A stretch of DNA of 64,000 nucleotides from Podarcis gaigeae (GCA_964106915.2 OZ066920.1), one strand, 5' to 3'. Shown: positions 1,551-35,690, counted from the stretch's first letter. A program made the numbers and translations. The notes: a model not told the origin generated them from the letters alone.

Positions 1551-1840
1551 TGTTACTGTACCTTTAAGATGAATAGAATCTCAAGAGCAAGACTTGTCAG
1601 TTGGCTTTGTCTGTTAGAGAAGGTTAAGATTAAATTCAGTGAAGGTTGTACATATTTGTCTCCTTACTTATTAATCTACAGTCAACACTGTAGCTTCCTT
1701 TGTTTTGGAACATCCTGCAGCGTGCCTTTCCTCCCTGCTCATGGGTTGTTAAGTATAGAAAGATCTGAGCCACAGAATCCAGCATTTTAAAAATGGATTT
1801 ACCAAGGTATTTCATAACTACTTTCTCAACTTTTTAACAG

Positions 1841-7800: not shown

Positions 7801-10800
7801 ACCTTGGATGGAAGTTTTAGACAAGTAAAGTCAACAATTTAAAAATGTAAGCCATTCATTGGGGTTAGTTAATTTACAGCAGTTGAAGTTTTCAATGCTT
7901 GCCCAGCAGTACATGTGTGTGGACAAGGATTACCAAATAATCTTACGATGCTTTTGTTTGTTAAACATATTGTATATATTGAGTGTTAATTTTTAGATTG
8001 TTTTATGAGCCTAGCTGTGAGATAAAATTGGCCTTACTTAGTCAACCATTGTCTATATTCTGAGTATAGCTGAATATATTAATATAAATATGCCAGTATA
8101 TTGAATTACAGTTTTACTGTTGTCTAGGTAAAAATTAAAGAAGCAACAGGACTACCTTTGAATCTCTCAAACTTTGTCTTTTGTCAATACACCTTCTGGG
8201 ATCAGTGTGAGTCAACTGTTGCAGCACCAGTTGTAGACCCAGATGTGCCTTCACCTCTGACCAAGGATGTCCAGTTTACAGTGACTTTTGCTCATTGTAA
8301 GGTAATTTAGTTTGGTTGGAATGCTAGAAAAATACATTTGAGTCCATATTTTAAACACACACACACACACACACACACGTATGATTCCATCCTACTGTAC
8401 AGTGAGATGGAGATGAAACAAGGGGTTCTAATAGCTTCATTAAACAACAACAAAAATTCCTTTCCATTGCTTTCAAGTGCCTCCCCCACCAATTACCTTC
8501 AGTCCATTCCACTCACCTTTTGGGCAGGCCACCAGGTTCTTCACACACACACTCTGGGCCACAGTTTGGGAACCCTGACATAGGTTAAACAGAATTCTGC
8601 AAGTTATTAGTGGCATTGAATGCTGGAGTTGTGTAACCTGCTCCTGGTACTTTTATTTGTGATTTCCAGTGGAAAGAGCAAGGAAGACAGAACATACAAC
8701 TTGGTTCTTAGGAAACCTAGTCAGAGAGAAGATGTGACCAGCCTATTCACTGTTATGGAAAATAGGATTGGATTAAGGAAATGAAACATTCATTCTTTCA
8801 CAAAAACATATTAGTTAGGAGTGAGTTAGTCTGGCAAACTTTCTGGTCTCTGAAAATGGAGCTTTGTTATTCCTAAAATGTTTGGTGGTTATGCTTATTT
8901 CAATATATCTCATTAGAACAGGGATGACAATATTAAATATATTGTAGTAATCAACACAAAATATGGAATTTTGACTACCTGTGCAAATATAACTGAAGTA
9001 TTAATATAAAATAGTGGTCTGTTCAGTATTATACAAAATTCTGCATTTTATCTGGTTCATGGAATTAATATCTTCATTGGGAGTTTTTTTCTGCCCACAA
9101 GAACATTTGAACATTCACCTGGTTTTTTAATCATAGAGCTGATAAAAATCATGCTTTAAGTGTTTTGCAGTAAGTATTGCAATTTTCTAGGATTATGTGG
9201 TGAATGTAACAGAAGAATTTCTGGAGTTCATTCAAGATGGAGCACTTGCTATTGAGGTATGGGGTCACAGATGTGCTGGAAACGGCAGTTCCATATGGGA
9301 GGTGGATACTCTTCATGCAAAAACCAGGACCTTGAGAGACAGGTAAACCTATGTTGTATTTTCCTTATAGTAGTGAAGCCTCACTTCAAATATAGGGAGA
9401 AAGGAGGAAGTACAGCACATGTGCCAGAGATGAATTGAGAGCTAGAGGGTGATGGGTGTGTGTGCCTGTGAGAGGTGGTAGGAGAGAAACTGAGCACAAA
9501 TAGTCATAGTCTTCTTTCTGCAAGAATATTTTCATAGTCTTCTTTTCATAGTCTTCTTTCTGCAAGAATATTTGATTTGTTAATTACTAATTGTATTGTT
9601 GCTTCCTACCCTTGGCACCTAGGGGAAGAAGGGTGGGATAAAAATCTAATAAGTAGATAAAATGAATGGTTCTACAAATTTCCACTAAAGTGTAAGGAGG
9701 AGTATTCATACTACTCTTATTGCTTTTTGGATTGTCTCTAGGTGGAATGAAGTGACACGTCGAATAGAAATGTGGGTTTCAATTCAAGAACTGAATGAAC
9801 TGGGGGACTATACAGCTGTGGAGCTCCACCAGGCAAAGGATGTAAATACAGGAGGGATTTTCCAGCTTCGACAGGTACAATTAATTTTATCCCTCCCAGA
9901 TAAGAATACTAAAGTGTGTTTACATTAATTTACATGTTTCCCTACTTATATGACCAGGGTCATTCTCGCAGAGTTCAGGTGATGGTTAAACCAGTACAGC
10001 ATTCGGGAACATTGCCACTTATGGTAGAAGCCATTCTGTCTGTCTCCATTGGCTGTGTGACTGCCAGATCAACCAAATTGCAACGGGGGTTGGACAGTTA
10101 CCAGGTAGGATAAGTGGCTTTAAAGTGCTAAATTATTATATTGTGGTGCAGATTTGTTGTTTTCACTTGTGCCTTTGAAGGATACTGTGTGGAATTTGTA
10201 TGTACACTTGAAGCAAGGCATGGATGATAGCTTCTCAAGGGCCATTAGGAATGGCAGCTAAATGGAACATCATGTCTTGAACTGGCATCCCTTGAATGCC
10301 AGATACAATATCAAATTGGTGACTTTCAGGGGCTTGTAACCTTTCAGGGGCATCTTGCTGGGCATTATCAGAAACTGAATGCTGAGTAGATGAAGTTTGC
10401 TGATGGGAATTGTAGTTCAAAATATTTGGAGGACACCAAGTTGGAGCAGGCTGGTTTTAAAAGTTTATTGTAAACTAGTCATCGCAAGCCTCAGGTACAA
10501 CCTCTTCCTCTTTTGTAAGCCCGATGAGGAGACTGAAAGGGCTACCTGGAGATGCTAGCAATTGAACCTGAGACCTTCTGCATTCAAAAGCAGATGCTCT
10601 GCCATTGAGCTACTGCCCTTCCCCTCAACAACCACTTGCTCACCTCTTGGGCTCTGTGCATTTGTATACTAAGAAGTGACTTACACTTGATGTGCTGAGG
10701 GACTGAATCCAAGTCTTCCCTCCATCCACAATGGCCTTGTTTGCATGTAACCTTAAATCATAGTTAAAACAACAACAACAACTCTGGAAGGGCTCTCCAG

Positions 10801-13800
10801 CCTTTTTGGGCCCATAGGCACATTTGCAAACCAGACAAATAGTTGTTGGCAACCCCCCCGCCCCCTTTTCAAGCCTAATTTCAGCAGCCTCCTTTCTGTG
10901 ACATGTGGTAGGACACAAGCCTGAATCTGCCTTGTAGGGTGGGCAAAGCTCATGATTTGTATCTCTCCGTATAAATCAAAAGTGGTAAGCCAAGCACAAA
11001 TACTGGCTTCCACTCATGACTTATTTGGAAGGAAACAAGCCATGAGCCCAAGTTTGCATGTCACTACAAGACAGACTCTGGCTTCTTTCCTTTCCTGCAT
11101 GGCATAGTCAGCTGCGAAGGAAGGAGGAAAATGTTTGTGCACATTAAAACATAGTTTATTTTAAGCTACAGTTTAACACTGCACGTGAACCTGGCTATTA
11201 TGTGATTGCTGAATGCCCACTGTTACATCAAAGATGTGTAGACTGAGGGCATAATGATAAAGATCCAGCATAAATTACCAGAGATAAACCTCATGTAGAA
11301 GAACAGGTGGACACTTCTCCCATCAGTCATGTGCTTCAAAAAGTGAACTAATTAATTTAAAACAAAACAACAACCCAATGCTTGAAAGCATGAAGATATC
11401 ATATACATAGTTTATGTCTCTAGAAAGCAAGGGAGCATCATTGCATGAATTTTGCTTCTACGTGATTAGGTATTAGCCTGGAGGTCCTGACTCTCAAAGC
11501 TTTTTACAGTAAGTGGTAAAGAGAAGCAGCACATGTCTGTTCTCTTCACCATACTAATGGATCATTAAACCTTTATATAAACAAAGAAATAAAATAAGGT
11601 TTGATGCTTTCTGTTCTGTCTTGTTCTAATTTGTGTCCATGATGTTTGATCTTATTTGGAGTTTGTTAGCAAGAAAAATGCATGTTCTCTATGTTTATAA
11701 AGTTTATTTTTTTCTACCAGAGAGGAGATGATGATGATGATGGTGATATGGATAGTTATCAGGTATTGCTGCTGCTGTTGTTGTCGAATCACATAGCATG
11801 GGGCACAGCTAATGCTAATAGTTATCAACTCCAAAAAGTTACTGAAATAATTTGCTCTTGGAACTTCATGCATTAAAAGACACTGATTTAAAGAACAAGC
11901 ATCTCACCTTAATTTGACAATACACTGTGCTCTTTCATGTGACATTTCTAATGATCAATATATTAATGATTTATTTAGATTGTTGAAAATTAAGAAACAG
12001 CATGGTGGCTTGCAACTTAATTAAAACAACTGTCAATAAAACAATGTAAAACAGATGCAGAAGATACAAAATAGCAAAGAAATTTCAGGGAGGGAAAAGC
12101 CAAGGATTAAAAACCATGTCAAGTACCTGCCAGAAAAGGAATGTCTTCACTCACTGATGAAAGTCCATCAAAAAGGGGACAAAACAGACTTCCCTGGGAA
12201 GGAAGTCCCGCAGAGCCTGGGCAAGGCAACAGAGAAAGTTGTATTGTGTGTCAAATTCAGATGTTGGTGTAATGCAACGGAGACGTACAAGAGAGATTTA
12301 CAGACATCTCTTATATGGTAGAATTGAGGCCAAAAGCTGAATTCTTCATTTTTTTAACTAAATAATGTTTGAAATCATAATAATTTTTACATACAATTAT
12401 TTGTCATCCATAATTTTTACAGGTTTCATTAAATCACATTTTGTTCAGTGCAATAACAAAAACCTTCAAATATTTGTGTGTACTGTACTGTTAAACTATT
12501 TTTAAATAATAAAAAGCTAGTCCTGTAAAATTTACTTTCCTGATGCCTACAGCTTTAATATATTTATGAATTAATGAATTCTGTATGAAGGCTTCCCTAT
12601 ATTAAAGGTTTTTAAAAAACTTTTTAACAAGCAGCAAAAAACAAAAAACGAAACACCAGTTGTATAAATGTAGGTATCTATGCAAATACCCTAGTAAGTT
12701 GTACAGTTGTTCCAGAAACCTACAGCTCAAACTACAGGTGATGGCTGATTCAAATGCCTAAAGCTCCTCTCTGACCCAGTCCTGTGAAACAAGGAAACTA
12801 GAAGTCCAATTTAGGAGTATAAGGAATAAATGGGTGAGCAGTGCTAAACACCCACATCCACACACCAGAGGCAACTCAACACACACTGCTTACCTTCTTA
12901 CAACCTTCTCCCCAAGCACTCTTCTCACAGATAGAGACACTTCTGGTATTTAGCCTGGATGAGGAGAAAATGGCTTCAGAGAACAAACTGCAAGTAGATA
13001 AACCACAAGGAGAGGGAAGGCTTTGCACTTCCCATCCAGGAGGACCCCCACCTCCATAAATATGGTACTTCGATAAGTTAGGCAGATCTAGATTTAAATA
13101 CACCATCCTGCTGTCAACAGTAGTTTGAGCCTGAATTAGCTACTAACTTGCTTCAAGCGGTTCATGGCACTTCCTGGTAATGAATTATGAAGAATGGATC
13201 AAACATTTCTTTAATATCAGAAAGCATGATTGCATGATGGGTTTTTGTTTGCATGTGGATGATTTAGTTACTCTGGTAACAGCTTCTCATAATGGAGTTA
13301 ATACAGGTTTAAGGGTATATATGTTGATGTCTCTTTAATTGTTTTCTCTTTCATATGCTACTAAATAGTTTGTTGGCCAATGCATTATTTTTCTGCTTGG
13401 ATCTAAATCACAAATTTGCAAGAGACAAAATACACAAAGAGCTCTAACTATGGAGTGGGTGGTGCAGTTTCAGCTTTTCATTCTTTATGCTCTTTGCAAG
13501 TTGGGTGAGCTTCCTTTCTTGGGTTATGTACTATCTGATGTAAAGGTGAATGAACACTATTTGTTAACATCTTCCAATCAAAGTTGAAAACTGCATAAAA
13601 TTAAATGTGCATGTTGTATATGTTAAAAAAAACCAACTCTCTTTTTCCATAGGAGGAAGACTTAAATTGTGTGAGAGAGAGATGGTCAGAGGCACTAATA
13701 AAACGCAGAGAATATCTAGATGAACAGATTAAAAAAATTAGCAATAAACAAGGTTCGTGGATCTTGTGGTTTAATTATAAGAATTTTTCATTCCTTTGTA

Positions 13801-16800
13801 TCAAAAAAGAATGTTAGCCTAGTGTATTACTGCTTTATTTTTAAAAGTTGTTTGTATTTGAAAGGCTTTTTGTGATGTTCAGCTCATTATAAAGTGAAAA
13901 ATTAGGATAATTTGCTCATTACAAAGTGACTCCACCTTTGAGAGCAGAATTTTCATTAGCTTTGTTGGATCTAATCTGCATTCATTGGAATCCAAAACCA
14001 ACCTGTCACTTTGCTACTCTTAAATAATTGGAAAATGTATTATTAACCCGTTGTTTTCTGGATGCCCCTGGAAAAAGTACTTCCACAGTATGTGACCAAT
14101 AGTCCACTCTTCATATCCGATATCTCATTATAGATAAAACAGAAGATGACATGGAAAGAGAAGCACGTCTTGTAGAACAGTGGGTAGGGCTAACAGAAGA
14201 AAGAAATGCTGTGCTAGTCCCAGCACCAGACAGTGGGATCCCAGGTGCTCCTGCAAATTGGTAGGTTGACTGAAATGCATTATATTTCAGCTTGCTTGCA
14301 AAATAACTTTTGAGTGAATATTGTATGCAGTTAACAGGATAGTAAAGATCTGAGGGAAGAATAAGCTGCTAAAATGCTAAATGTGTGTTCATCTTTTTTT
14401 AAAAAATGACCTTTATATTCCACAACACAGAACATTAGTGCCCTTAGTTCAGCTAGAAACTTATTACAACTAGAAGAAAAACTGCTGAAGTGAACTGGTT
14501 GTTTTTTTGCTGGTCTATGTATCCTGAAGATTTATCTCACCCTGAGATCTTTGGATTAAGGGCAGGATATAAATATTTTAATATATAGAAAATAAAAAAG
14601 GTTTCTGGAGGTAAAATGCACAGTCATGTAATAATGTAGAATCGGGGTTTATGTACAAGTTCATTTACAGATTCCATAATATTTCCTGTTTTATTAACGC
14701 TTGTAGTAGGTGTTAACACCTTAAGTAAAAAAAAAACACTTTCTCCTGTCTCCACATTTCGTTCAATAATGCATTGAGATGATTAGATTCAGGACTTGCA
14801 TCCAGCTCCAAACACTTCATTTCCATAAAACTAGGGACTGTTTAGGAGATATAGTAGAGAAAATATCACCACCCCACCCCTGTGAATTCTTTTCTCTTTT
14901 ATGAACCATGGGACTAGGAGCTCTCCTGTTAGGGTCCAAGGATACACTGTAACATTTTGTTGTAGGTTCCCCCTAGTTAATGTCATTTGTTTTTAACGCT
15001 TTCAGTTTTCCATTAAAATATATTTGCATGTGTATGGTTTATTTTATTAACTGGGGTGTTTCCTTACTGTTAGGATCCCACCTTCTGGAATGGAAACACA
15101 TATACCTGTACTTTTCCTTGATTTGAATGGTAAGTTACAGCTTATGAAGGGAGTGGAAGTATGAATTCCCTTGAATATGCTTGACGCATTTATATGCTTT
15201 CGTATTGCCGGTGTCTTATTGCTGTTTGGGAATCTGAAGTGCTGCAGATCTGGATCTGGTGGCTTTTAAATAATCCAGGTTTTTTTGTTTGTTGAATGTA
15301 TTGAAAGAAGCACAGTTGTTGGGCATTAGAGTTCTTCCATCATGTGTAAAAACACATTCTTAAACATCTTCATCAAAAGTTCCAAAATGATATTTTGCAA
15401 TGATTTGTATTTGTTGCCATGTACTTGCATTGTGGGGTAACAAATTGCATTAAGCTGATGTATACAAATGTAACATGAGAAGTGTAAGTCTATCCTATCT
15501 AAAGCATTGTTTTCCAATTATGCATGATATCTGTGTAACATGTTTAAGACTGGGACATAGGAAATAATTAAAGCTAAAAAAAATGTCTTGTAACTTAATT
15601 TTATTTTTTGTTAGCTGATGACCTCAGTGCCAACGAACAGCTTATAGGTCCACATGCATCAGGAGTAAATTCAATACTACCAAAAGAGCATGGAAGTCAA
15701 TTCTTTTATCTACCAATCATAAAACACAGCAAAGATGAGGTAAATTTCTAGTGAGCTATTCTGTACAGTAGATGTGTGGCCATTATATTTTTACTGTTTG
15801 CATTTTGCCAATCCATTTTCTTTCTTTTTCAATACATTTAATGCTACATTATACCTTTGAAACCTTGAATTAGAGTTTACTCTTTTCTACTTGATTTTTG
15901 TTGAACAAGTGTGCATAGTTTATTGTTATTCAGAATAACCTCTTAACAAAGTGATCTTTGATTAGCTCTTAATTCATGTGGGGTTGAAATACCTACATTT
16001 TGAAGAATAAACATTTAATATTCTTGAATTGTATAAATGAAGTCCAACTTCTTAAAGTCACTATGTAGGTGTTCCTTTCTTCTCATAGATACTTACAGCT
16101 AGTAAAGACTCTCCTCCTGCAAGAGAGGGGAGTGGTTGTGGTCGGGAGCCGGACTCCGCCTCAAGAAGGGGGCGTTAGCCCCCTGCCTCCCACTCACCTA
16201 GCTGGCGCCCACACCCATAGGCAGGCACCCAACCAGGTGCCTGCGAGGGGGCGTGTTTAGCAGCCTAAATTGCTGCGGCACCAGCCTTCCGGCCTCACTT
16301 TTCGTCGTCCCGTTGCGAGTCACCCACCCTCCACTCCCTTAGAGCTCGGGGTCTCAGTTTTCTTTTGGCCTTGCTATGGACCTTAGGTTGGTCGCCCTGG
16401 TTGTCCGGGGGGCCTGGTAGGAATTTTTCTATTTGGCATTAGGCTTTTTGGTTTTTTCGCCTACCTCGTAGCAATCGTCACAACTTTCGTGGTATTGGTG
16501 GGTAGGTTAGGCATTGGAATAATGTGGTGTGGTGTGTCGAAGGGCTAGGTGTGGCCATCGCCTGCGCCTTCAATTTTGGGTATTCCGTTAAAGGAATCCG
16601 GCAGTCGTGTATTCTGTCCCTGCTTGGCGGGAGGCCATGGCACGACCCTCAGTGACATCAGGGGAGAGCTTATAGTTGAATTAGCATCAACAGGCTCCAC
16701 CTACTGGTGAATAAACCCCCTGTTTTAGACTCACCCCTCTCTGAGGGGGTGGAGTCAGCTGACGTAATCCAATGCCTAAGCCAATACCTTTTCACTTGCT

Positions 16801-19800
16801 GTAATCAATAAAGTTGTGGCCTTTTCTTGCCCATTAACCTTATATCACGTGTCCTTGTGTTTTCATTCCACTACGTGGAGATCGGGTCCTCGAACCACAA
16901 CGTAATATTCCACACCCTTTCGCCAAAGCCTTAGAAAATGGTAAATGCACTGACTTCCATGCTAGCGCTAAAAATGTCTTAGTTAATATATCCATAGCTG
17001 TCTCCCTGTGTGCTCCACTCACTTACCGTATTTTTCGCCCTATAGGACGCACTTTTTGCCCTCCTTTTTGCCCTCCAAAAATGAAGGGGAAATGTGTGTG
17101 CGTCCTATGGGGCAAATGCAGGCTTCCCCCTCCCCCAGCCCCGCAAGCTCCCAGAGCGATGCCCCTGGCATCTAAAACGGGGGGGTTTACTCGCTCTGGG
17201 TCCTGTTCTGGGGGCTGGGGGAGGGGGAAGCTCGGGCTTCCCTCGCCCCAGCCCCGCGCCTGGGGGAAAAAAATAATTTCCCCCTTTTATTCCCCCCCCC
17301 CCAAATCTAGGTGCGTCCTATGGGCCGGTGTGTCCTATAGGGCGAAAAATACGGTACCTTTTTAGTTGTCCCAAAGGGATGGTTTATGGATTTAATTTAA
17401 TATCTTGGCTTATTATGTCTTTGATACCCTGTGAAACATCTATCCATTATTAACCTGAATACATTTCTACCAAAAGTGGGCCAATATTTCCTTGCTTCTT
17501 CAACATGAATCAGATAGGTACACTGGGATACATTTTTGCAATTCTTACAGGGATATAATGCCATGTACAGTGGAACCTTGGTTCCCAAAAAGCTTGGCTC
17601 CCAAACAAATTGGCTCCCGAACGCCGCAAACCTGGAAGTAAGCGTTCTGGTTTGTGAATGTTTTTTGGAAGCCAAACATCCATTTTGACTGTCGGCATTG
17701 TTTCTGGGGCCAATCAGCCAATCAGAAGCCATGCCTTGGTTTGCGAACGTTTTTGAAGTTGAACCGACTTCCAGAATGGATTGAGTTCAGGAACCAAGGC
17801 ACCACTGTATACAATATATTATAAAAGTTTCTATTGAATCCACACAAAGTAAAATAGTTTTTGGCTCATTATTTCTATATATAATGTCATTCTATACCTG
17901 TCATTCTAACAATAATTTCTTTCTCTAAATTTTGTTTTATTAGTTGTTTCTTGTAGATTTCTGATAATAATTCAAAATATGGAAGAAGCCTGCTTATGTT
18001 TGTTCCTCTTATAACATTTTTATTGGGCTTCTAGACTGGCAATTTAGCATTTGGTTTGTTTTATGCAAACTGAGCATATTAGGAAATAACAAGTTGATTC
18101 CCACCTCTTCCTCCATGGCAAAATGTCTTTATACCTGTGAAACCATGTACTAGTGCAACTAATATTGCACATGGTGATAATGGTTAATTTTTGGTGCAGA
18201 TCAATCATCCAAGCTGGAGCTTATTCAGATTCTTCAGTGATATGTTAAAAATCAGCAATAGAAAAATAAATATGATCTTAGGCAGAATCTTCATTTTATA
18301 ACTTTTGCTTTTACTGACAATGAAATGAGTAATTTTACTAATCTATACATACCCTGTTTGTTTTGTCCCAATATGGACAAGCAGTTGGTTTATAATAGAT
18401 TTGAAATATTGATTGATAAATATATCCCTAGCTATTTTATTCTTGGTTGCTTAATGTGAGAAGGGAGGGGATATTTCCTTACTCACTTTATTTAAAAAAG
18501 CCAACCACCTTCTGCTCCAGCGGTTTTCCCAAACCCATAGTCCTGCCACCATTTAATATTACTTATACCCTTAGCGCCCTTAACTTATCAGTAACCTGAG
18601 TTACCGTTAATATCAATGTAGTACTAAGACTATCAGGTATAGCTATTATATTTGACAAAGAAATCAATGTTTATTTATTGCATTATGCAGTGCACAATGC
18701 GGTGCACAATGACTTTATACTACCTACTTAAAAGGATATGCACTTTGTTAAGATGTTGCTTAAATGCAGCTTATTTTACACTATTACTAAACTAAGTCAG
18801 CTTTGAAGGACCTAATTTAAGATTCTTTTGCCAGATTGTTCTATTTACTCCATCCCAGTTAAGCCTCACCAACTCTATAACTGAGGACCTTTACTGAAGC
18901 CTCTCTTTTGACCTGTACTGACCTGTTGAAGCACAGGGCTGTTTCCGTTGCTCTGCCCTGGAATCTTTCTCTCCTACCAGACACCAGACAGAGCCTGGCA
19001 TTCCAAACTGCCTCTCACTTCTTCTCCCCTCTTCAGCCTGAGCCAAGCCAATTCAGCTACCTCAGCCTTCCTTTCATGTCCTCTTCTTCCTTAATCTTCT
19101 TCCTCTGCTCTCTTCTTCTGGCTGCCCACCATGAACACCAAGCACCAACAAATGCTGACTCCTCTCTGAGCAACATGGACTAACCCTAACTGACCTTAAC
19201 TGCCATATATTCACTTCTTCTGCCCCCTCTGGTCCAGCCCCAGCCAATCACATTGTCTAATTGAATATTCTAAACCTGCAACCACCAATCAAAATGTGGA
19301 TACGTTTTATTCTTCTTTTGCATACTGATAGTTCTGTCTCCAACCCCTCCTTGGCTGTCTGTTTAGCTCCCCCAGTGACAGTTAAACCAACTGCTACCTG
19401 ATCAGGCAAAGCACTTTCCCCATCAAATACATTACAAAAAAAAATTGACAGAGGTACTATTCTACTCAGTTTTACTTAGACTCATTGAAACCATGGGACT
19501 TTAATCGTGTTCATTAATTGCTTTTGTTAATTGTCTAAGCATTTCTGTATTTCAGGAATGTTAAAAGGGTAGGGTAAACATTTAAGCAATTCAGATCAGT
19601 TTCCTTTATAATATTCTACCAAATTGTGCTCCTAGGTTTCGGCCACTGCTGCATGGGACCCTTCTGTGCATGATTCAGTGCACTTGAATAGGGTAACACC
19701 TCAAAACGAGAGAATCTATTTGATTGTGAAAATCACAGTCCAACTCAGCCACCCTGCTGCAATGGAACTTGTGCTACGTAAAAGAATTGCTGCAAATATT

Positions 19801-22800
19801 TACAATAAGCAGGTGATGGATGAATTCTGCTTAATGTATCTTGTTTTGACTGTATTTCTTTTTTGTTGACTTAACTGTTGGGATAAAATTTAGAAATAAT
19901 AAACTAAACCAGGAAGTATGCACATACAATGCTGTTTTTTAAAAATAAAAAACCACAGAAATGTTTTATTGATGTTTAGTTTCGTTACTAAAGGAACATG
20001 CAGAATAACAAAAGGAACATAAACAAAGGAAGGTATACAAAGCTTGATAAATGTTTAAATAAAAAGGTTAGCTTATGGTTGTAGTAATTTACATTCCAAT
20101 TTATGCAATCAAATAAAGGTGTTGTTCATAATGTTGCATGTGTTGATGGAGGGTGAAAACAATGTTCAATTGTTTTTACAAAGTAAAATAATACCATGTT
20201 TCTTTTAATTTTTTGCCATTCCCAGTGAGGTATTGGGTGGTATGAAAAATATGCTAAGGAGGCTGAATTGGGATGCCAGGATGAGAGTTAGCCCCTACCC
20301 CATTGCATGTGACCTGAACCTGCAAGAAACCATTTTCTTAGCTTGCTTTAATCACACTATTCATCATATGAATACTTTACTCTTTAATTCCCCCCTAGAG
20401 TTTTACCCAGAGTCTCAAACGAAGAATATCTTTGAAGAATATATGGTATGCTTGTGGTGTGGCCTATGAAATAGTTTCAAATATACCAAAGGTAAATTCT
20501 ACTGTACTTTTTTCAATAAGTTAGAATAAATGAAAAAATCAAAGTAAAAGAGATTCCTGTAAACTGCATCCTCAAAGTACTGTTTTAGGCATTCTGAAGT
20601 GGCATGTGTATAAGGACTGCATAACGTTGTGTTCTGTTTGTGTCCCAGTTTTTAAACAGATTAAATTAAACAGTTTAATTTTTAGGCCACAGAAGAAATT
20701 GAAGATCGGGAGACACTGGCTCTGATGGCAGCCAGAAGTGAAAATGAGGGTGCATCTGATGGTGAAACTTACATTGAGAAGTATACTCGTGGAGTGTTGC
20801 AGGTAGAAAACATTTTGAGTCTTGAACGATTAAGACAGGTGAGTAGAAAAAAGCTTCAGGCCAAATTAGTTTAGTTATTGTAAAACAATTGCCACAAGAG
20901 ATGTCTCATATTTCCATTTTCTTTACCTTTACTATCAGAATGCTGGCAAACGTTTAATGTGAACTTGCTCTTGGGATGCAATTTTGATATAATGTTCCAT
21001 TCTTTATCTGTCTTCAGAGATATCAAACCTGATTAAAGTAAAAATGATTTTTCTGTATTAATAAATATACCTTTATATATACTTTCTGAAGTGAGTTTTA
21101 ATTGCCTAGATCTCTATGTGAAACTACGGATTTCAATTTACTCATTCTATCTTAACACAGGCAGTCACAGTCAAAGAGGCTATTTCTACTAAGACTCGAC
21201 ACATGCAGCGGAGTGTCAGTACACCAAATGTCCACAATGTAAGATAATTTTTCAAGGTGAAAGACTCACATATTACTAAAAATGTTAAGGTTGTAGACAA
21301 AACGTATTCATTTTGACCCTGGATAAATTGAGATTAATCAGCAGAATAAGTTGTCATAGGGAAATTGTGGCATATTCTACGTATTCCAGTAGTTATTTGT
21401 CAGGGATCATTTAGGTTTAATGCTCCTTTCCTACATGCAAGTATAACCCTCCTTTCCTTTAAATGCAGGATATACAGTACATAAGTGTTCATGAAGTTCT
21501 ATTGCCATGTTTATCAGTCTTTTGTTTATTTCAAATGCAGCCTAGGCTTAGCAGTGGGTGAGGAGACTGCAGTTCTCATGTGAAGGCCAACCTGCTGCCA
21601 GGCAGGCTGATAGCATTCATTGGGCTCATATTTATTTATTATTGTGTTTTAGGTGTCCTGTAGTCGATTAGATATTTCTGGCTGTGATGAAGATAAGGTA
21701 TGAACATTAAGTGAGCAGATGTGGTGGCACCTTTTCGAAAATGTAGTCAAATAGACTTGCCTTTTCCTTCCTATTTGATACAAGAAAGCCTTAACTTTAG
21801 TCTTCATTAATAATGATAGGTTGTTTAGAACAGGAATGTATAATCTGATGCATTACTAACTCGAGAAAATCAAGTTGAGCTGATCTCAGGGTGCTTCACA
21901 AAATAAAATATGAAAGACTGTCAGTTATTTCTCTGGTGCAGGGGCATGTGGGGGTGCAAAAAAATTCTCAGGGTAGTTAGTATTGAATCAATTACCAAAA
22001 AAGTCCTAGGTATCTTCCCTGTGAAATAGGAGAGATTACGGGGTATTTTTGTAATAGATTTTAACAAAATAAGACTGTGCTCCATGGAGCAAGTACCACT
22101 GAATGCATTGGGGATATACTTCTGAATAAAATGCACAGGACTGAGTTGCATAAAATAAATTTGAAAAGTTTTGGTAGTAATAAAAAGCATATATGTGTGA
22201 GAGAACATTGACTATTTTGAAAGGATCTGAACTCTTTTTTGTAGCTTGAAAATGAACATTTTCCTGTTTCTTTTCTTGGTTGTTTATGACTTTAGGGTTG
22301 GTCAGAAGGTCATCTAGATGTATTAGATTGTTCTTCCAGTTATCAAGATGTATCATGTTATGGTACTTTACCCAGAGATTCTCCTCGCAGAAGTAAAGAT
22401 GCTGGTGGTAAGATTTTTATTGTGTTTAGTTTTAATTGGGTCAATATATGAAATTATTAATATAAAGGGTAAAGGGTACTCCTGCCTGTACGGGCCAGTC
22501 GTGTCCAACTCTAGGGTTGCGCGCTCATCTCGCTCAAGAGGCCAGGGCCAGCACTGTCCGGAGACACTTCCGGGTCACGTGGCCAGCGTGACTAAGCGGC
22601 ATCTGGCGAGCCAGCACCAGCGCCGCACACAGAAACGCCGTTTACCTTCCCGCTATAAAGCGGTACCTATTTATCTACTTGCACTTAGGGGTGCTTTCGA
22701 ACTGCTAGGTGGGCAGGAGCTGGGACCGAACAACAGGAGCTCACCCTGCCGCGGGGATTCGAACTGCCGACCTTGTGATCAGCAAGTCCTAGGCACTGAG

Positions 22801-22917
22801 GTTTTACCCACAGCACCACCCGCTGTCCCTCTTGCAATTCTAGATTGCTATAAATGGCAACAGAGTATTTTAAAATGGACTCACTATTAATATATTATTA
22901 ATATACACACACACATA

Positions 22918-22973
<56 letters not shown>

Positions 22974-23435
22974 TATATATATATATATGATGCAAAGGGT
23001 ATTTCCCTCTGTTCTACTGTCTTTAAATTCTTGTGGTAAATGTGTATGTGTAAAGCAGCATTCAGTCCTAACGGATACAGTGTTTTAATCTGCTAGCAAA
23101 GGCTATTTCTCCCATGATGATGAAGGTTAGCTTGTGGGTGCTTTGCTGCTGCAAGGGCTGAAAACAACTATCCCAGCACCCTTTAAGAAGGTTCTGAAGT
23201 AAAAATGGGATGTGCCTCTCCAGACCAAGCACTTAGGATCATATACCAATAAATTTTATCTCCTAGAACGAGCATTATTATTTTATATAGTAGAATCAAT
23301 GCACATAGTGCTTTATGTAGTGATATGAGCAGTGATATGTTTAGAGAAGCTTTTAATGTACGCGCATTACGATATTTTTATATTTTGTTTGAAGCTGCCC
23401 AGAGTGGCTGGGGAAGCCCAGCCAGATAGGCGGGG

Positions 23436-23477
<42 letters not shown>

Positions 23478-26400
23478 GACAGTTTCTCCCCTGAGGAGTT
23501 TACAAAAGCAGAGGAAGAGAAGTAGGAAAAGAAAATGTGCACATGCATATACATGACAGCGTAAAGGAAGAGGAGGGAGATTTAGTGATAAGAAGGAAAG
23601 AAAAAAATTATATTGGAAGCTGCCTAGAGTGGCTGGGACAATCAAGTCAGATGGTCAGGGTACAATTATTATTATAAAGAATAACTGCTTAAGGAACAAG
23701 TGATTAAAATTTGGTTTTAGTACTAATGTTGTAGCTTTGTGACTTACTTTGTTTTAAACTGCCAAATTACATATGAGTTGTTACCTTATGCTGACAGGTA
23801 CATTATCATTCTCTCTTGGGTTATATTAACCAGCAGCTGCACTGAAATTCTAGTGATGCTACGAGTCATATGTAAATAATTACCACTATGTACTTCTATG
23901 AAAGAATGGGAGGCTTTTTCTTTTGAGACATCCACAGCTCATATTTAGTTCTCTTTGAAGTATGTTCTGAATTGCAGACAAGCTTTTTGCTAAACTTTGT
24001 TTAAGGAAAACCTTCTTGATGCAAAAGGAGGGAGTTGTAGGTGATAAAGTATGTTTACTTTACAAATAGCAGAGAGCATGCTTTGAGACATGCTGGACTG
24101 GTTTGCATATAATCCTATACCTTGAGCAAACCTCTCAAACAGTGTGAGAGATGGCACTGTGGATACAGGAGGAGAGGAAATCAGCAAAAGTTGCCATGCC
24201 CCCTCCCCATCACTTAATTAAAAGCCGTTTTCCACGGTGATAAAGTCTGGATCCAACCCTCTCTGTTACTCCACTGTTATTTCGTTGTACAAACAACATT
24301 TACCATGAATGGTAAGCAGGGAGATGAACATATTTCATAACATGGCACAAATGAGGATCTAATCTGCTCGTCATCATGGTTATTTCCTGTGGTGCTTTAT
24401 ATCACTTTCTTTTTCATTTTTTACTTATTTTTGCAGTTGATGTTAGAATAACTAACTTATTTGTGTGTGTGTTTATTTTCATTATCCAAGGTTATGTATC
24501 AGAGAATCCTCATGCATCAACCGTCAGCCCATTTAAAGCATTTTCTCCACAGCCACCCAAGTTTTTCAAACCTTTAATGCCAGTAAAAGAAGAACATAAA
24601 AAGATCTCCTTTGAAAGTCGGCCTCTACTTAGTAAAGAGGTAGGTAGTTAAGAACTATTATAGTTTCTTAATCTTGATTAATTTATGTGCAAGTAGCTAT
24701 TGTCTTTGCCAGTAAATAACTTGCAGTTTGTATTTGTGATACGGAGAATTTGGAATCCTACATTAAAATTCAGCAATTCCTTTTCTCTGTATTGGAATGA
24801 TAATCCTATTTCATTTTTGTCTCCTTTTGTTCAGCATGGAGTGTGTTTCTGCTTAATCGTTGTCTGTTAAAAAACAGCTGTCCTGAATTGTCAATTTCTT
24901 TTATTAGGCTATAGCACTATTTTAGGAAACGGTTTCATGTTTTCCACAACTGAAAACAAATGTGGTGTTGCATGGATTTCTGTAATTAAGCCATTTAACC
25001 TCCTTGCCTGAGTTGTTTTAAAAACATGTCCTCCTGTCTTACTAACATGCATGGGTTTGTAAATACCTTATTTGTGTGATGTTTTGTGTGTCTTAACCTT
25101 TGCAGAGCATGCCATCATCTCAGGTACATAGCGCTGGTTGTGTTGTGCCCTCAGGAAGTAATGCCAGTAGCATGCCAGTAGAACACAATAACAAACATGA
25201 GGAAAATATTGTAAGTTTTGCATTGGTTTCTGTCATAATGCCTGGTGGTGGTTTAAGGCCCTCTCATGGGGTGTAATTTTTGCTATACTGTAATAGTGAA
25301 GGAAACAAGATGTGCATACAATGTGCATGTTGGCTTTTAAATATGTGGCAAAATGCATAATTTGTTACAATTATTTTAAATTGATCATTCATATATTTTG
25401 AAATGATCATTCATATATACGTTTTCAAGGGAAAAGGTAGAACTTTGAAGGGCTTATTCACTGGTAAATTCAGAATGTCAGCATTCATGAACTTTCCAGT
25501 GCTTCCACATGTTTAATTTGTAGATTGGTTTAGACTGAAAAATGTAAATGTTGAAGTGTACAGCAAAGCAGACTTGCCATTCATTTTCATATATTTGAAA
25601 TGTCCACCTTTCTTGGCTTCCTCACATAGACAATCAACTTTACAAAATAAAAGTGTTGTATACCTAGCGTTGACACTGAAGTGGATATACTGCAGTCTTG
25701 GGTTTAGGCCTGGTTTGGGGACTGAATAAACTTTGGTTGCACTGATGGATGGCCTTTACTAAGAAGTAGATGGAATTGGGACCCTGTTACTCTTGCTTAG
25801 TCTTTCAGCTGCCTTTGATACCAGTGACCATGGTATCCTCCACGATAAACTGTGTGGAGTGGGTATTAGAGGCACTGTATTACAGTGGTTCCACACCTAC
25901 CTGCATAGCTAAGTCCAGAGAATAACATTAGGGGAGTGTTCTTTATCCCCTTGGGGTTCTGACATCTATATGAAGTAGTTGTGTGTGGTCATTAGGAGTT
26001 TTGGAGCAGTACACTGATGATATGCAGCTCTATTTATCCATAACATCTGAATCTGGAGAGATTGTGCAAGCCCTGGACCAGAGACTGGATGCAGGCCAAT
26101 AAATTGTGTTGAACTCTTGTGAAGATTGAGGCTCTTTGAATAGGTGGTTCTCGTTTCCAAATGATAAGCCAGTTGCTTCTTCTGATTGGGGTTATGCTCC
26201 CTCTAAAGCATCAAGAGGTGCTCTAGGATACATCTTTGTCACTGAAGGCTAAAACATTTGCACTGGCTGCCTATATGCTACCAGCCCAGGTTCAAAGCCC
26301 TTGTGATGATATGAAAGCTGTGAACGGGTTGAGTCCAAGATAATTTAACTACATTGGTAGTTAATCCTCACCACCACCACAAAAGGCATTTTTATACCAC

Positions 26401-32400: not shown

Positions 32401-35400
32401 AATGCAGAAGTAGTAACTGTAAACCTTTACAATTTTAGCAGGACTCTGAGGATGACGATGAGTTGGAGGCCATTAACAAGAAGCCTTATGTGCCCGAAGA
32501 ATTTGCTGACTTCAGTGTCTACAATGCCAGCTTAGAAAACAGGGAATGGTTATCCTCTAAAGGAGACTTTGTAAACTCTCGTGTTGTTGAAAAAGAAGTA
32601 TCTCGTAGTCCTACCATGAGCAGTATTACTAGTGGCTACTTTTCCCACAGTGCCTCTAATGCTACTTTGTCTGATATGCTTGTTCCCTGTAGTGATAGCA
32701 CAGATCAATTAGCCAATCAGATAAGGGATTTGGATTCTAATGACCATTCTGTAGCCCATCTAACTCACGATTTAAGACCTTCAAACAAGGAGACTTCAGA
32801 ACCAGAAAGAGACTTGGCAAAATATAAGGTGCTCATGTCACCAGTTAAAGAAAATAGTGCCTTAGCAGCAGAGGTTCCAATGTATGAAAGTACTACTACC
32901 ATTCCCACACAGTTACAGTGCACAGGTTTGGATTCCTCAGCTAATAAAAACACACCACATGGGATTGAATTTCCATTTCGAGAAGCAACAGTTGAACATA
33001 CTTCAAATGTTTTTGAGGATCACGCATTTACAGAATTCATGGGTGCTGAAGATGGAAAGGAACTTGAATGTTCTGTAGGTCCACAGTTCTGTTCCAGCAG
33101 CTCTTCTAGTCAAAAGAAAAAGGTCTCAACAGCTGGAATGAATTGTGCCTCTGGTTTCTCAGATAATATTTACAACCAGGACAATCCTTTGAGCCATTTG
33201 CAATCTGCACCAGTGGGATATCAGCGGTCAAACAGTACTGAAAATCCTTCATTGTCTGTCAGAATAAAAGAGGCTTCATATTGTCAGATGTATGCAGACT
33301 CTTTCCTAGCAGATGACTTCATTGGAAAAAATCATTTAGATGTCTCTCATTGTGAAGTTGTAACTTCTGAAGAACACCCTAGTTGGGTGGAAGTGGGGGA
33401 ACAAGTGTATATTGGTAGTAACAAGCCAGGCATAGTAAGATATGTCGGTCCTGTTGATTTTTCATCTGGTACCTGGGTTGGCATTGAATTACATTTTCAA
33501 ACAGGTAAGATATGGTCCTTTCCATTATATATTTAGAATCCTAGATACAAGTTGTCTGGTGATATTTGTATATCCCAGTATTTTAGGACTGGAGAAGTCC
33601 AACTGGTGAAATTAGTAATGCCTGTTTACTTTTATTCATTTACATCCCACCTTCCTTCCTTCATGAAACTCAAGGCAGCACACATAGGCATTTCATTGGG
33701 GACCCTAGAGGATGGGGTGCAAAGTGGGGTTGGGTCCAAACCCTGGGATAATTTGTCAGAAAGATTGTTGTAAACAAAGCTAGTTGATAAAGAATAGAGA
33801 AAGCTGCCGCGTGTCTGCTAGGACCAAGCAGATGATTCCATTGTTGTGGGTGTAGAGCGCTGATGTGCAGTGACGAGCTGTCAAATACTATTCCAATACT
33901 GGCCCAATCTGCATGTCACAGTAAACCTTTGTTTGTCTTAAATCATGGTTTAATTGGATGCATGTGTCTCCCCTGCCTTGTGTCAAACAAGGAATACTAT
34001 GGCTTATTGTGTTTTCAAACAAACCACAAATAGACTAGACTCTAGTCACAAATTTCTTGCAAGCTCTTCTCCTAACATAATCAAATATAGTCATACCTCT
34101 CTAAAACATCTTTAATTCCAACAATTTTTCTTACAAATTTTAATGATTAAATAAATGAATTTAATCAAGATTATCTCACTTTATGTTCTGGACCTTAATT
34201 CACCATATGAGAGGGAAGCATTGATAAACAACTGAGGCAAGAAAATAAACCACCAGCAGCAAGTCAGAAATATACCAAGTATGGGGAAGGGGAAGAAACT
34301 GCTCAAAGACCTGCATGGCAGAAGAGAGGCACTTTCACAATTAAACCATGGTTCAATACAAACAGACTTATTGTGTCATGCAAACGAGCCCATTGATTGC
34401 TACTGCATATCAGAGACTTTCAAATATATTATGATCTATTTGCATGTCACAATACTCCCAGGATACTTGCACAACCAGGGAATTTTATTTTAGAGAAGAT
34501 TCATTAGTAAAATTGACAGTTGAAGATGTTGAGACCTGGGAACAGGACTTTTCCCACAGGTTCCTTTAATTAAGGACAGAAGAAATTTATCCATATAATC
34601 ATGCAGTGCTTAATGGTCAGCAGCAGAAGAAAAATAAGCAACTGAAAATATGCCCAGACTGCTCATGGACACTTATATAGGGCACTGGTTACTAAAAAGT
34701 CACAAAAGAAACAGAATTGCAAAGTTGGGACCCAAGGGTCATCTAGTCCAATCCCCTGCAATGCAGGAATCTCGGCTACAGCATCACTGATGGCCATCCA
34801 GCCTCTGCTTAAAATTTTAAAAAGAAATGTATAGGTCATTCAAGTATAGTGCACAATTGTGTATTAAATTAGTATGATGCACAATTGATGTGACCAGGCA
34901 AAAGCACATCATATATTTCTAGAAATTGCTGAAGTCTCTTTTCCCATTAAGATCATAGAGGAGCTGCTGCTCAACCAATTGGCTCATGAAGGAGTTGAGT
35001 AGGAATTGCAGCTTCCAATTTTTCAGATCAAACCACTTTACATACTGCAGAAAATATGAGTGCCACAATATGTCAGTTGCATCTAATTTTGTGTCATTTT
35101 AATGCAATCAGATGATACAGTTGGCTGAGGCTCTTGTGTGTGTTTTCTGATCACATGCTTCATCCCGTTTGTGATGTTTTTTGTGCTTCCACCATGCTTG
35201 AGGCTTACATCTGATCAACCATGAGTAACACCATTACTTCCTCTTAACCAACTGGTTAGTACAACACAGTAAAGAGTGAACCTTTGTAAGCATTAACCAT
35301 GGTGAAAGCTAGTATCAGTCTCTATGCTTTAATAAATATTTAATAATTCCTCCCATGGTTTCAAACTTCTGTTAATTCTTACTGGAATTATTTGTGCTTA

Positions 35401-35690
35401 TTTAAGGGAAACATGATGGAACTGTAAAAGGCAGAGAGTACTTCCGCTGCAAACCACGACATGGGATATTTGTTCGTCCTGAATGTGTCACTAAAACACC
35501 AGCTCCAACAAAGATATGCAGTAGCAGTTCACGATCTCAGGTATCATCCACCATGGACACACGGAAGAGTTCAGTTCTGCAGAAGTCATCCTCTTCCAAA
35601 GCAGAGGCAGAATCCTTCTGTCAATCAGGAGATGCAGCAGCTTCTGCTTTTTCTAGAAAACAGGAGATCAGGAAGTCTTGGATTAACTGA
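1841..35690 (+). CDS. KIF13A: Kinesin-3 KIF13A, 3' portion (motor and most of FHA lie upstream of the window); 25 coding exons, ~1433 aa in window, ending in a CAP-Gly domain
   Basis: Exons (all AG/GT): 1841-1998, 2427-2637, 3381-3543, 4175-4315, 6633-6782, 7449-7613, 8128-8301, 9191-9342, 9742-9874, 9958-10104, 11721-11762, 13653-13752, 14134-14260, 15074-15129, 15615-15739, 19636-19812, 20399-20491, 20686-20838, 21161-21238, 21653-21697, 22296-22407, 24491-24639, 25106-25210, 32442-33504, 35407-35690 (TGA 35688-35690). The total of 4303 nt keeps one open frame. Peptides recognised as KIF13A: EPDYNYEFAQMEVIMKTLNSNDPVQ, DPFYEAQENHNLIGVANVFLECLF, EFADFSVYNASLENREW, SITSGYFSHSASNATLSD. Confidence 0.95.
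3822..4020 (-). mobile_element. Solo copy of the 5' module of the 16106 element
   Basis: Reverse complement starts AGACTCTCCCTGCAAGAGAGGGGAGTGGTTGTGG and ends CGGCCTCA, as does 16106-16297. Confidence 0.6.
5490..6425 (-). mobile_element. CR1 LINE 3' fragment
   Basis: ORF 6044..6436 (-) has RT motif FNLFLNYLDEG..KFADDT; ATAGAATCATAGAA is the reverse complement of the CR1 3' microsatellite tail. Confidence 0.85.
11721..11762 (+). CDS. KIF13A: KIF13A 42-nt frame-preserving cassette microexon (RGDDDDDGDMDSYQ)
   Basis: ttttttctaccag|AGA...TATCAG|gtattg; phase 0-0; resembles the recalled human alternative exon RDDEDGDDMDSYQ. Confidence 0.85.
16106..16875 (+). mobile_element. GC-rich non-coding retroelement remnant (LTR-like or DIRS/Ngaro-like; class uncertain)
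   Basis: First ~190 bp duplicated in reverse at 3822-4020; CAATAAAGTTGTGGCC near the 3' end; GC-rich against AT-rich intron. Confidence 0.5.
17026..17354. mobile_element. Same Tc2/pogo-like family, opposite orientation
   Basis: Same TIRs and TA TSD; subterminal blocks reversed relative to 266-783. Confidence 0.85.
17568..17807. mobile_element. Tigger-like MITE
   Basis: TA|CAGTGGAACCTTGGTTCC...GGAACCAAGGCACCACTG|TA. Confidence 0.75.
22463..22829 (-). mobile_element. Sauria SINE
   Basis: Reverse complement of the tRNA-like head GGGACA..GGTGGTGCTGTGGGT and the ACCTTT-type tail. Confidence 0.85.
22920..22989. repeat. (TA)n microsatellite
   Basis: Direct reading. Other microsatellites: (CA)n 8355-8378 and 32041-32089, (TTA)n 23439-23477 and 49175-49203, (TG)n 40789-40812. 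Confidence 0.95.
25106..25210 (+). CDS. KIF13A: KIF13A 105-nt cassette exon (SMPSSQVHSAGCVVPSGSNASSMPVEHNNKHEENI)
   Basis: ctttgcag|AGC...ATT|gtaagt; phase 0-0; resembles the recalled human alternative exon SMPPPQAHNPGCIVPSGSNGSSMPVEHN. Confidence 0.85.
25730..26330 (+). mobile_element. Decayed L2 RT fragment
   Basis: Disrupted LSAAFDT.DH and Y.DD-like motifs. Confidence 0.55.
27196..27558 (+). mobile_element. Sauria SINE
   Basis: GGTGGCGCTGTGG head, (ACCTTT)n tail, TSD CCTGATGAGA. Confidence 0.88.
28490..29080 (+). mobile_element. L2 LINE 3' fragment
   Basis: LDYC.., LHWLPVRF..FKVLVLTFKA motifs (ORF 28648..28983); (TTA)n tail; the same tail recurs alone at ~23370-23477 and ~23612-23675. 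Confidence 0.8.
30571..30706. mobile_element. Palindromic MITE (probably hAT)
   Basis: CAAGCTTCCTCAA..CCCTCCAGATGTTTT / AAAACATCTGGAGGG..TTGAGGAAGCCTG long inverted arms; TSD unclear. Confidence 0.65.
32442..33504 (+). CDS. KIF13A: KIF13A large penultimate exon (Ser-rich tail plus N-terminal half of CAP-Gly)
   Basis: Matches ORF 32463..33536; donor ACAG|gtaaga at 33505; ends GIVRYVGPVDFSSGTWVGIELHFQT. Confidence 0.92.
35407..35690 (+). CDS. KIF13A: KIF13A terminal coding exon (C-terminal half of CAP-Gly and tail)
   Basis: tttaag|GGAAACATGATGGA; phase 1 matches the upstream donor; translates GKHDGTVKGREYFRCKPRHGIFVRP...RKQEIRKSWIN*; not shown in this frame by the ORF track. Confidence 0.88.

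Follow-up and report, generated by a model that had tools for sequence, protein, structure and literature searches.

KIF13A of the lizard Podarcis gaigeae with a split C-terminal CAP-Gly domain and an RKSW tail, a probable ancestral architecture lost in placental mammals

The 64,000-nucleotide stretch of Podarcis gaigeae DNA analysed here (GCA_964106915.2 OZ066920.1; the whole of it is called the window) holds the 3' part of a gene that, from its sequence, is the orthologue of KIF13A, a kinesin-3 transport motor. Very probably, its last two coding exons specify a complete CAP-Gly domain split by a single intron, a variable serine-rich linker and a 23-residue tail ending in RKSWIN, and this arrangement is ancestral, under selection and lost in placental mammals. 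CAP-Gly is a domain that binds tubulin tails. Published accounts treat it as a structural difference of KIF13B from KIF13A, the latter being without the domain (PMC9081326), and its presence has been used to assign orthologues across animals, with KIF13A again listed as lacking it (PMC8576264). Among the publications searched, those mentioning both KIF13A and CAP-Gly concern mammals or non-vertebrates only. By the sequence comparisons presented below, the rule that only KIF13B has a CAP-Gly domain is true for mammals only.

A split CAP-Gly domain at the end of lizard KIF13A

The end of the coding sequence is arranged as follows (^ marks an exon boundary).

32439..33504, + strand: penultimate coding exon, 355 open codons plus 1 base; acceptor AG at 32437-8, donor G^GTAAG
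32619-32662, + strand: conserved ..SSITSGYFSHSASN.. stretch of the penultimate exon (44 bases)
33384..33504, + strand: N-terminal half of the CAP-Gly domain (N-half), WVEVGEQVYIGSNKPGIVRYVGPVDFSSGTWVGIELHFQT plus the first base of a Gly codon
33505..35406, + strand: intron of 1902 bases, phase 1, GT...AG, with the AG at 35405-6
35407..35690, + strand: last coding exon, 94 codons; acceptor ...tatttaAG^GG, TGA at 35688-90
35407..35486, + strand: C-terminal half of the CAP-Gly domain (C-half), (G)KHDGTVKGREYFRCKPRHGIFVRPEC, with GKHDG where the canonical motif is GKNDG
35487..35618, + strand: serine-rich variable linker of the last exon
35619..35690, + strand: conserved C-terminal 23 residues, FCQSGDAAASAFSRKQEIRKSWIN, then the TGA stop
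35895, 36000, 37063 and further on: candidate poly(A) signals

The penultimate exon codes for a KIF13A-specific disordered tail (..PYVPEEFADFSVYNASLENREW.., ..FTEFMG..) and then for the N-half. The codon at the junction of base 33504 with base 35407 is split as g^gg (Gly), so the intron is in phase 1; the terminal motif reads ..SAFSRKQEIRKSWIN. A preliminary description, made from this DNA alone, had proposed the same splice and a product containing WVEVGEQVYIGSNKPGIVRYVGPVDFSSGTWVGIELHFQT-G-KHDGTVKGREYFRCKPRHGIFVRP and, at its end, RKQEIRKSWIN before the stop. That peptide matches exactly what the two exons encode, and in the genomic sequence the splice reads as GT-AG, phase 1 and without stops. 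The domain call is also borne out by Pfam (CAP_GLY, PF01302; a 65-position profile with a curated cut-off of 26.5 bits), against which the lizard halves were scored exon by exon: the N-half matches profile positions 1-34 with 39.2 bits (E 6e-10) and the C-half positions 39-64 with 39.3 bits (E 6e-10), each alone above the cut-off. Spliced orthologous proteins reach 86-90 bits over positions 1-65. Among solved structures, 2cow, the CAP-Gly domain of human KIF13B, gives the best match to the N-half (E 3e-13), the PDB holding no KIF13A CAP-Gly that could compete with it.

Across the junction the lizard loop reads G-KHDG, with His where GKNDG has Asn. The same replacement is found in 12 of the 12 KIF13A-type sequences compared, as GKH(D/N)GTV; each of the five KIF13B-type sequences keeps Asn, as GKNDG(SV), and so do most, though not every one, of six invertebrate ones. 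A longer signature, GKH(D/N)GTV.G..YF.C...HG.FV, is common to KIF13A-type sequences of lizard, bird, sturgeon and teleosts. Judged from this alignment, GKHDG is a variant of the GKNDG motif and the motif is not absent; none of the publications searched contained 'GKHDG'.

Spliced sequences from other lineages carry the same arrangement. Four transcript-type Logan contigs, P0019 (contig L001), P0018, P0068 and P0121, join exactly at the lizard splice point; all read ..QLGKHDG.., end in ..AASAFSRKQENRKSWIN and score 86-90 bits with CAP_GLY. Where the two overlap, P0019 matches a passerine 'KI13A' protein at 96% identity; P0018, also bird-like, is another transcript fragment with KIF13A tail and CAP-Gly; P0068 and P0121 belong, by similarity, to a non-amniote-like lineage. 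The 778 residues of P0121 run from DUF3694 through the KIF13A linker to a whole CAP-Gly domain (87 bits) and RKSWIN. Genomic reading frames of the same groups depart from the protein right after ..Q(L/M/T)G, into the GTAAG of the intron. From these sequences, junction 33504^35407 is probably used in this lizard as well.

Separately, in fourteen small sequencing runs (60-140 million letters) of three related species, 63-69% of the words of the penultimate exon are present, as would be expected if this long exon had been targeted by capture and the runs were not RNA.

Selection, ancestry and loss in mammals

Genomic contigs L003, L004 and L005 keep both exons intact, and L002 has the last one; by similarity, L004 and L005 are squamate-like and L003 is nearer birds. 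L002-L005 share an identical stop position, the acceptor AG^G.AAACATGATGGA and the donor G^GTAAG, and neither frameshifts nor stops were found in the orthologous exons of these other reptile contigs. Seven squamate-like genomic reading frames retain the N-half, and among eight squamate-like sequences its mean pairwise identity is 0.78 versus 0.53 for the preceding linker. Ratios of nonsynonymous to synonymous substitution rates (dN/dS) were estimated by the Nei-Gojobori method for pairs at a synonymous divergence (dS) of 0.23-1.07, with four reptile sequences for the N-half; the segments are short (23-44 codons) and single values noisy, but the pattern is alike in every pair.

Linker before the domain: dN/dS 0.37-0.53
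CAP-Gly N-half: dN/dS 0.15-0.27
CAP-Gly C-half: dN/dS 0.08-0.31
Middle of the last exon (35487..35618): dN/dS 0.44-1.65
Last 23 residues: dN/dS 0-0.24

On these substitution patterns, the CAP-Gly domain and RKSW tail of lizard KIF13A are kept by purifying selection.

The domain can be followed well beyond reptiles. One sturgeon sequence (P0081) has the KIF13A linker motifs with the CAP-Gly N-half only; another (P0133) has them with the whole domain and ends ..KKQDNRKSWVS. Teleost KIF13A-type sequences (P0086, P0090, P0091, P0096, P0109, P0126, P0127) keep the domain, with GKHNG, and their spliced forms stop about 25 residues past it at ..TEPQTLIR (..TRGPPSMDTEPQTLIR), without the RKSW tail. 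Some cyprinid-like KIF13A-type linkers also carry tandem repeats of about 20 residues (..PPDFKGV..GIREDLGNIG..). An IQ-TREE phylogeny on about 81 columns, with the lizard halves entered as two separate rows, separates a KIF13A-type CAP-Gly clade (support 97/95) from a KIF13B-type clade (88/89) and places both lizard halves inside the tetrapod part of the former (98/95); because the alignment is short, only the main splits are trustworthy. KIF13B is the other paralogue, with GKNDGSV and YGVLV where KIF13A-type proteins have GKH(D/N)GTV and HG(V/I)FV.

The terminal motif is shared by the two paralogues. Frog KIF13B (Pelobates fuscus XP_063298079.1) ends ..KKIENRKSWAS and teleost KIF13B-type proteins end GENRKSWN[TSN]; the invertebrate homologues checked lack an (E/D)NRKSWxx end. 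Occurrence of this end in KIF13A-type proteins of tetrapods and sturgeon and in KIF13B-type proteins of frog and teleosts indicates that it predates the duplication. From these distributions, CAP-Gly plus RKSW end is the ancestral vertebrate KIF13 architecture, derived from the gene ancestral to KIF13A and KIF13B. It is kept in squamates, birds, another reptile lineage, a non-amniote-like lineage and sturgeon; teleosts keep it except for the RKSW tail.

Mammalian KIF13A, the orthologue, is 75-98% identical to the lizard gene in shared exons, including the first ~200 residues encoded by the penultimate exon, a stretch that reaches past FTEFMG. It differs at the end: the mammalian protein stops about 55-65 residues after FTEFMG, by an internal donor and a mini terminal exon, and lacks CAP-Gly, whereas lizard KIF13A continues for about 150 residues further in the penultimate exon and then into the 94-codon last exon. 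Mammal-like spliced fragments end ..(N/S)DQ^G(G/S)TTSR or similar, whereas those from genomic reading frames continue as ..NDQV(I/M)... The DNA of two mammalian contigs has AAT GAC CAG^GTAATA, which forms a 5' splice site within what reptiles keep as exon. About 300 bases past this internal donor, in the same frame and inside the intron, lies a decayed CAP-Gly N-half. In L006 (~1150-1620) the remnant reads SVAEQVCFG-NQSETMIYIGPVDFFFLTSIWVGVKV (tblastn E 1.6e-9) and the frame is open for about 140 codons beyond the donor; in L007 (~1500-1915) and L008 it reads WQALGEQVC.. (tblastn E about 6-7e-6). Pfam CAP_GLY gave no match in the mammalian remnants. In the sampled placentals, an internal 5' splice site (..NDQ^GTAAT..) in the old penultimate exon joins it to a tiny terminal exon (G.TTSR and a stop), and the former CAP-Gly coding sequence remains in the intron in decaying form. 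Named KIF13A proteins of bat, elephant and sheep are without CAP-Gly, so that the loss must be older than the divergence of these placentals.

The preliminary description had read the tail as KIF13B-like, the upstream exons as KIF13A, and the whole as an ancestral architecture that mammals lost secondarily. Each part is supported: (E/D)NRKSW is common to frog and teleost KIF13B, the CAP-Gly phylogeny puts the lizard domain with KIF13A and not with KIF13B, and the bird and other transcripts, the sturgeon and teleost domains, the clade and the mammalian remnants agree with retention followed by loss. The reading of the upstream exons is taken up next.

Gene identity and competing readings

A colinear series of KIF13A exons runs from 1833 to 24639 in the window (tblastn). 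The window begins at about residue 475 in shark KIF13A numbering, so that the kinesin motor and FHA domains lie upstream of it. Queries were KIF13A of bat (P0043), elephant (P0046), Callorhinchus (P0128) and Varanus (P0125) and the transcript fragment P0121; block ends below are alignment ends, not verified splice sites.

1833..25216, + strand: upstream KIF13A tail exons, corresponding to about shark KIF13A residues ~475-1329 and beyond (tblastn)
Approximate KIF13A blocks, + strand (tblastn): 1833-1997, 2426-2638, 3313-3564, 4175-4306, 6618-6818, 7446-7616, 8128-8301, 9191-9343
Approximate KIF13A blocks, + strand (tblastn): 9740-9874, 9955-10104, 13653-13751, 14133-14261, 15075-15131, 15599-15745, 19636-19866
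Approximate KIF13A blocks, + strand (tblastn): 20399-20506, 20686-20838, 21152-21241, 21653-21697, 22296-22409, 24490-24639
21653-21697, + strand: micro-exon of 15 codons, matched in the Varanus protein only
25103-25216, + strand: possible alternative exon, 60% identical to an insert of elephant KIF13A isoform P0046; the bat protein is without the insert
~45.1 kb, 46871-47098, ~49.5 kb and ~50.7 kb, + strand: SIRT5 exons, tail-to-head downstream of KIF13A (PDB match to SIRT5, E 1e-37)

The two small exons, 25103-25216 and 21653-21697, are likely alternative exons.

Could the gene instead be KIF13B, or a copy derived from it? KIF13B is known to carry CAP-Gly, the N-half finds its best structure in human KIF13B (in a PDB without a KIF13A competitor) and the ..NRKSW.. 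tail is common to KIF13B. Nevertheless, every upstream exon is closer to KIF13A, with per-exon identities of 74-98% when compared with bat, elephant-shark and Komodo-dragon KIF13A (74-100% with all queries) versus 38-67% to KIF13B of frog (the Pelobates protein) and teleost KIF13B-type proteins; for three linker exons, tblastn gave no match to KIF13B whatever. The first ~56% of the penultimate exon is 57-65% identical to source-named KIF13A of about twenty birds and of bat, elephant and sheep, the exon that encodes the N-half also encodes FTEFMG and the linker motifs specific to KIF13A, and both CAP-Gly halves fall in the KIF13A-type clade. The SIRT5 neighbour would fit the same reading: in human, SIRT5 and KIF13A both lie on 6p, though they are not known to be adjacent there, and KIF13B lies on 8p. 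Exon identities, linker motifs and clade placement refute a KIF13B identity for practical purposes, and the idea retains a negligible probability. A transfer in the other direction, in which sauropsid KIF13A regained the domain from KIF13B by exon capture or gene conversion, is scarcely more credible. Short domains can be shuffled and the RKSW tail does resemble that of KIF13B, but the domain is also present, with the same exon surroundings, in KIF13A-type proteins of sturgeon and teleosts, a single clade with its own GKH(D/N)G signature unites the KIF13A-type domains, and decayed remnants lie at the homologous place in mammals.

Several observations weigh against a selected, tubulin-binding CAP-Gly domain in the main lizard protein and against the breadth of its proposed history. 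The lineages of the Logan contigs are inferred from similarity only. Word searches with the bird C-terminal region and the lizard last exon returned genomic contigs but no spliced squamate transcript among the matches. The only named squamate model seen, a Varanus komodoensis KIF13A fragment (A0A8D2L1W4, P0125), is without CAP-Gly; its match to the penultimate exon stops after ..HCSANKSK and is followed by 22 final residues of unrelated sequence, CETQGSIYKLPQKQNWEQRVTD, so that short isoforms or a different major isoform are possible. The named mammals in which the domain is lacking (bat, elephant, sheep) are all placental. Finally, EEY/F binding is not assured, because the Asn of GKNDG is His.

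The transcript search and the Varanus fragment would suit an improbable alternative, namely that the CAP-Gly exons are genomic but stand outside the main lizard protein, which would be a short mammal- or Varanus-like isoform, or that they are exons being lost. Against it stand the low dN/dS of domain and tail at dS 0.23-1.07, the intact frames with conserved splice sites and stop in L002-L005, the seven further squamate-like frames that retain the N-half and the expression of the long form by birds (L001). The Varanus ending has no counterpart in the lizard window and reflects either alternative use of another 3' end or an error of the gene model; a mammal-like internal donor or G.TTSR mini-exon was looked for in the lizard and none was found. 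A minor short isoform may exist beside the long one. More substantial, though still on the unlikely side, is the thought that the domain has been preserved but has ceased to recognise EEY/F tails, the change from Asn to His having retargeted it to another ligand, or that it serves in autoinhibition. GKH(D/N)G replaces GKNDG in every KIF13A-type sequence, the Asn of GKNDG contacts the C-terminal carboxylate in known complexes, and the empty literature search for 'GKHDG' may be counted on the same side. However, the rest of the groove-forming pattern is kept (F..G.W.G.EL, YF.C, HG.FV), and the tubulin chaperone TBCE has GKHDG yet handles alpha-tubulin.

Likely function and wider meaning

The proposal that lizard KIF13A carries an ancestral, functional CAP-Gly domain draws its mechanism from KIF13B. 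On tyrosinated microtubules, full-length KIF13B has roughly twice the landing frequency that it has on detyrosinated ones, and its runs are longer; this preference depends on the tail CAP-Gly domain, which is dominant in the binding of the ADP-state motor (10.1101/2022.08.09.503328). By analogy, the C-terminal CAP-Gly of lizard KIF13A would give the motor a second contact with the microtubule, one that does not depend on nucleotide state. By recognising the EEY end of tyrosinated alpha-tubulin (or EB/CLIP tails), it would make landing more frequent and runs longer on tyrosinated microtubules. The preliminary description had also suggested that lizard KIF13A may bind tubulin or EB tails, and that it may share the terminal phospho-motif of KIF13B. 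Every KIF13A-type sequence seen has His for Asn in the loop, and the domain may therefore bind with another affinity than that of KIF13B, or prefer other ligands. The conserved 23-residue tail might, at a guess, hold a site for a basophilic kinase (RKS).

Kinesin-3 motors with a C-terminal CAP-Gly domain are familiar from vertebrate KIF13B/GAKIN and Drosophila Khc-73, which, like lizard KIF13A, run from DUF3694 through a disordered linker to CAP-Gly and a short tail. CLIP-170/CLIP-115, p150Glued and TBCB/TBCE have CAP-Gly domains of the same Pfam family (PDB matches with E 5e-8 to 1e-4), but those proteins are non-motor and mostly have GKNDG, whereas the lizard domain sits at the end of a kinesin and has GKHDG. 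A CAP-Gly-bearing kinesin-3 is already a known kind of system, and what is offered here modestly corrects, on evolutionary grounds, a rule drawn from mammals. As the preliminary description had cautioned, the domain is probably present in public gene models already: UniRef names a teleost KIF13A-type fragment 'CAP-Gly domain-containing protein'. The bird 'KI13A' proteins built by homology, however, end before the domain, as does the Varanus fragment.

A broader claim seems to us somewhat better than even: that the KIF13A of all sampled non-mammalian jawed vertebrates has its own CAP-Gly lineage, more than 400 million years old and with a fixed GKH(D/N)G, making it a second tyrosination-reading (or differently tuned) kinesin, and that the mammalian division between KIF13A and KIF13B was derived by a single splice-site shift. 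If this is true, the use of CAP-Gly as a criterion for telling KIF13B from KIF13A (PMC8576264) misassigns orthologues, and work on zebrafish, Xenopus and chick KIF13A is not readable through the mammalian domain map. Already on the present evidence, experiments on non-mammalian KIF13A need to be read differently, with a retained CAP-Gly domain in mind. Attention is also drawn to the conserved, unstudied terminal motif (..SAFSRKQE.RKSWIN) common to both paralogues. Mammalian and non-mammalian KIF13A offer a natural 'with and without' pair for the effect of a tail CAP-Gly domain on a kinesin-3.

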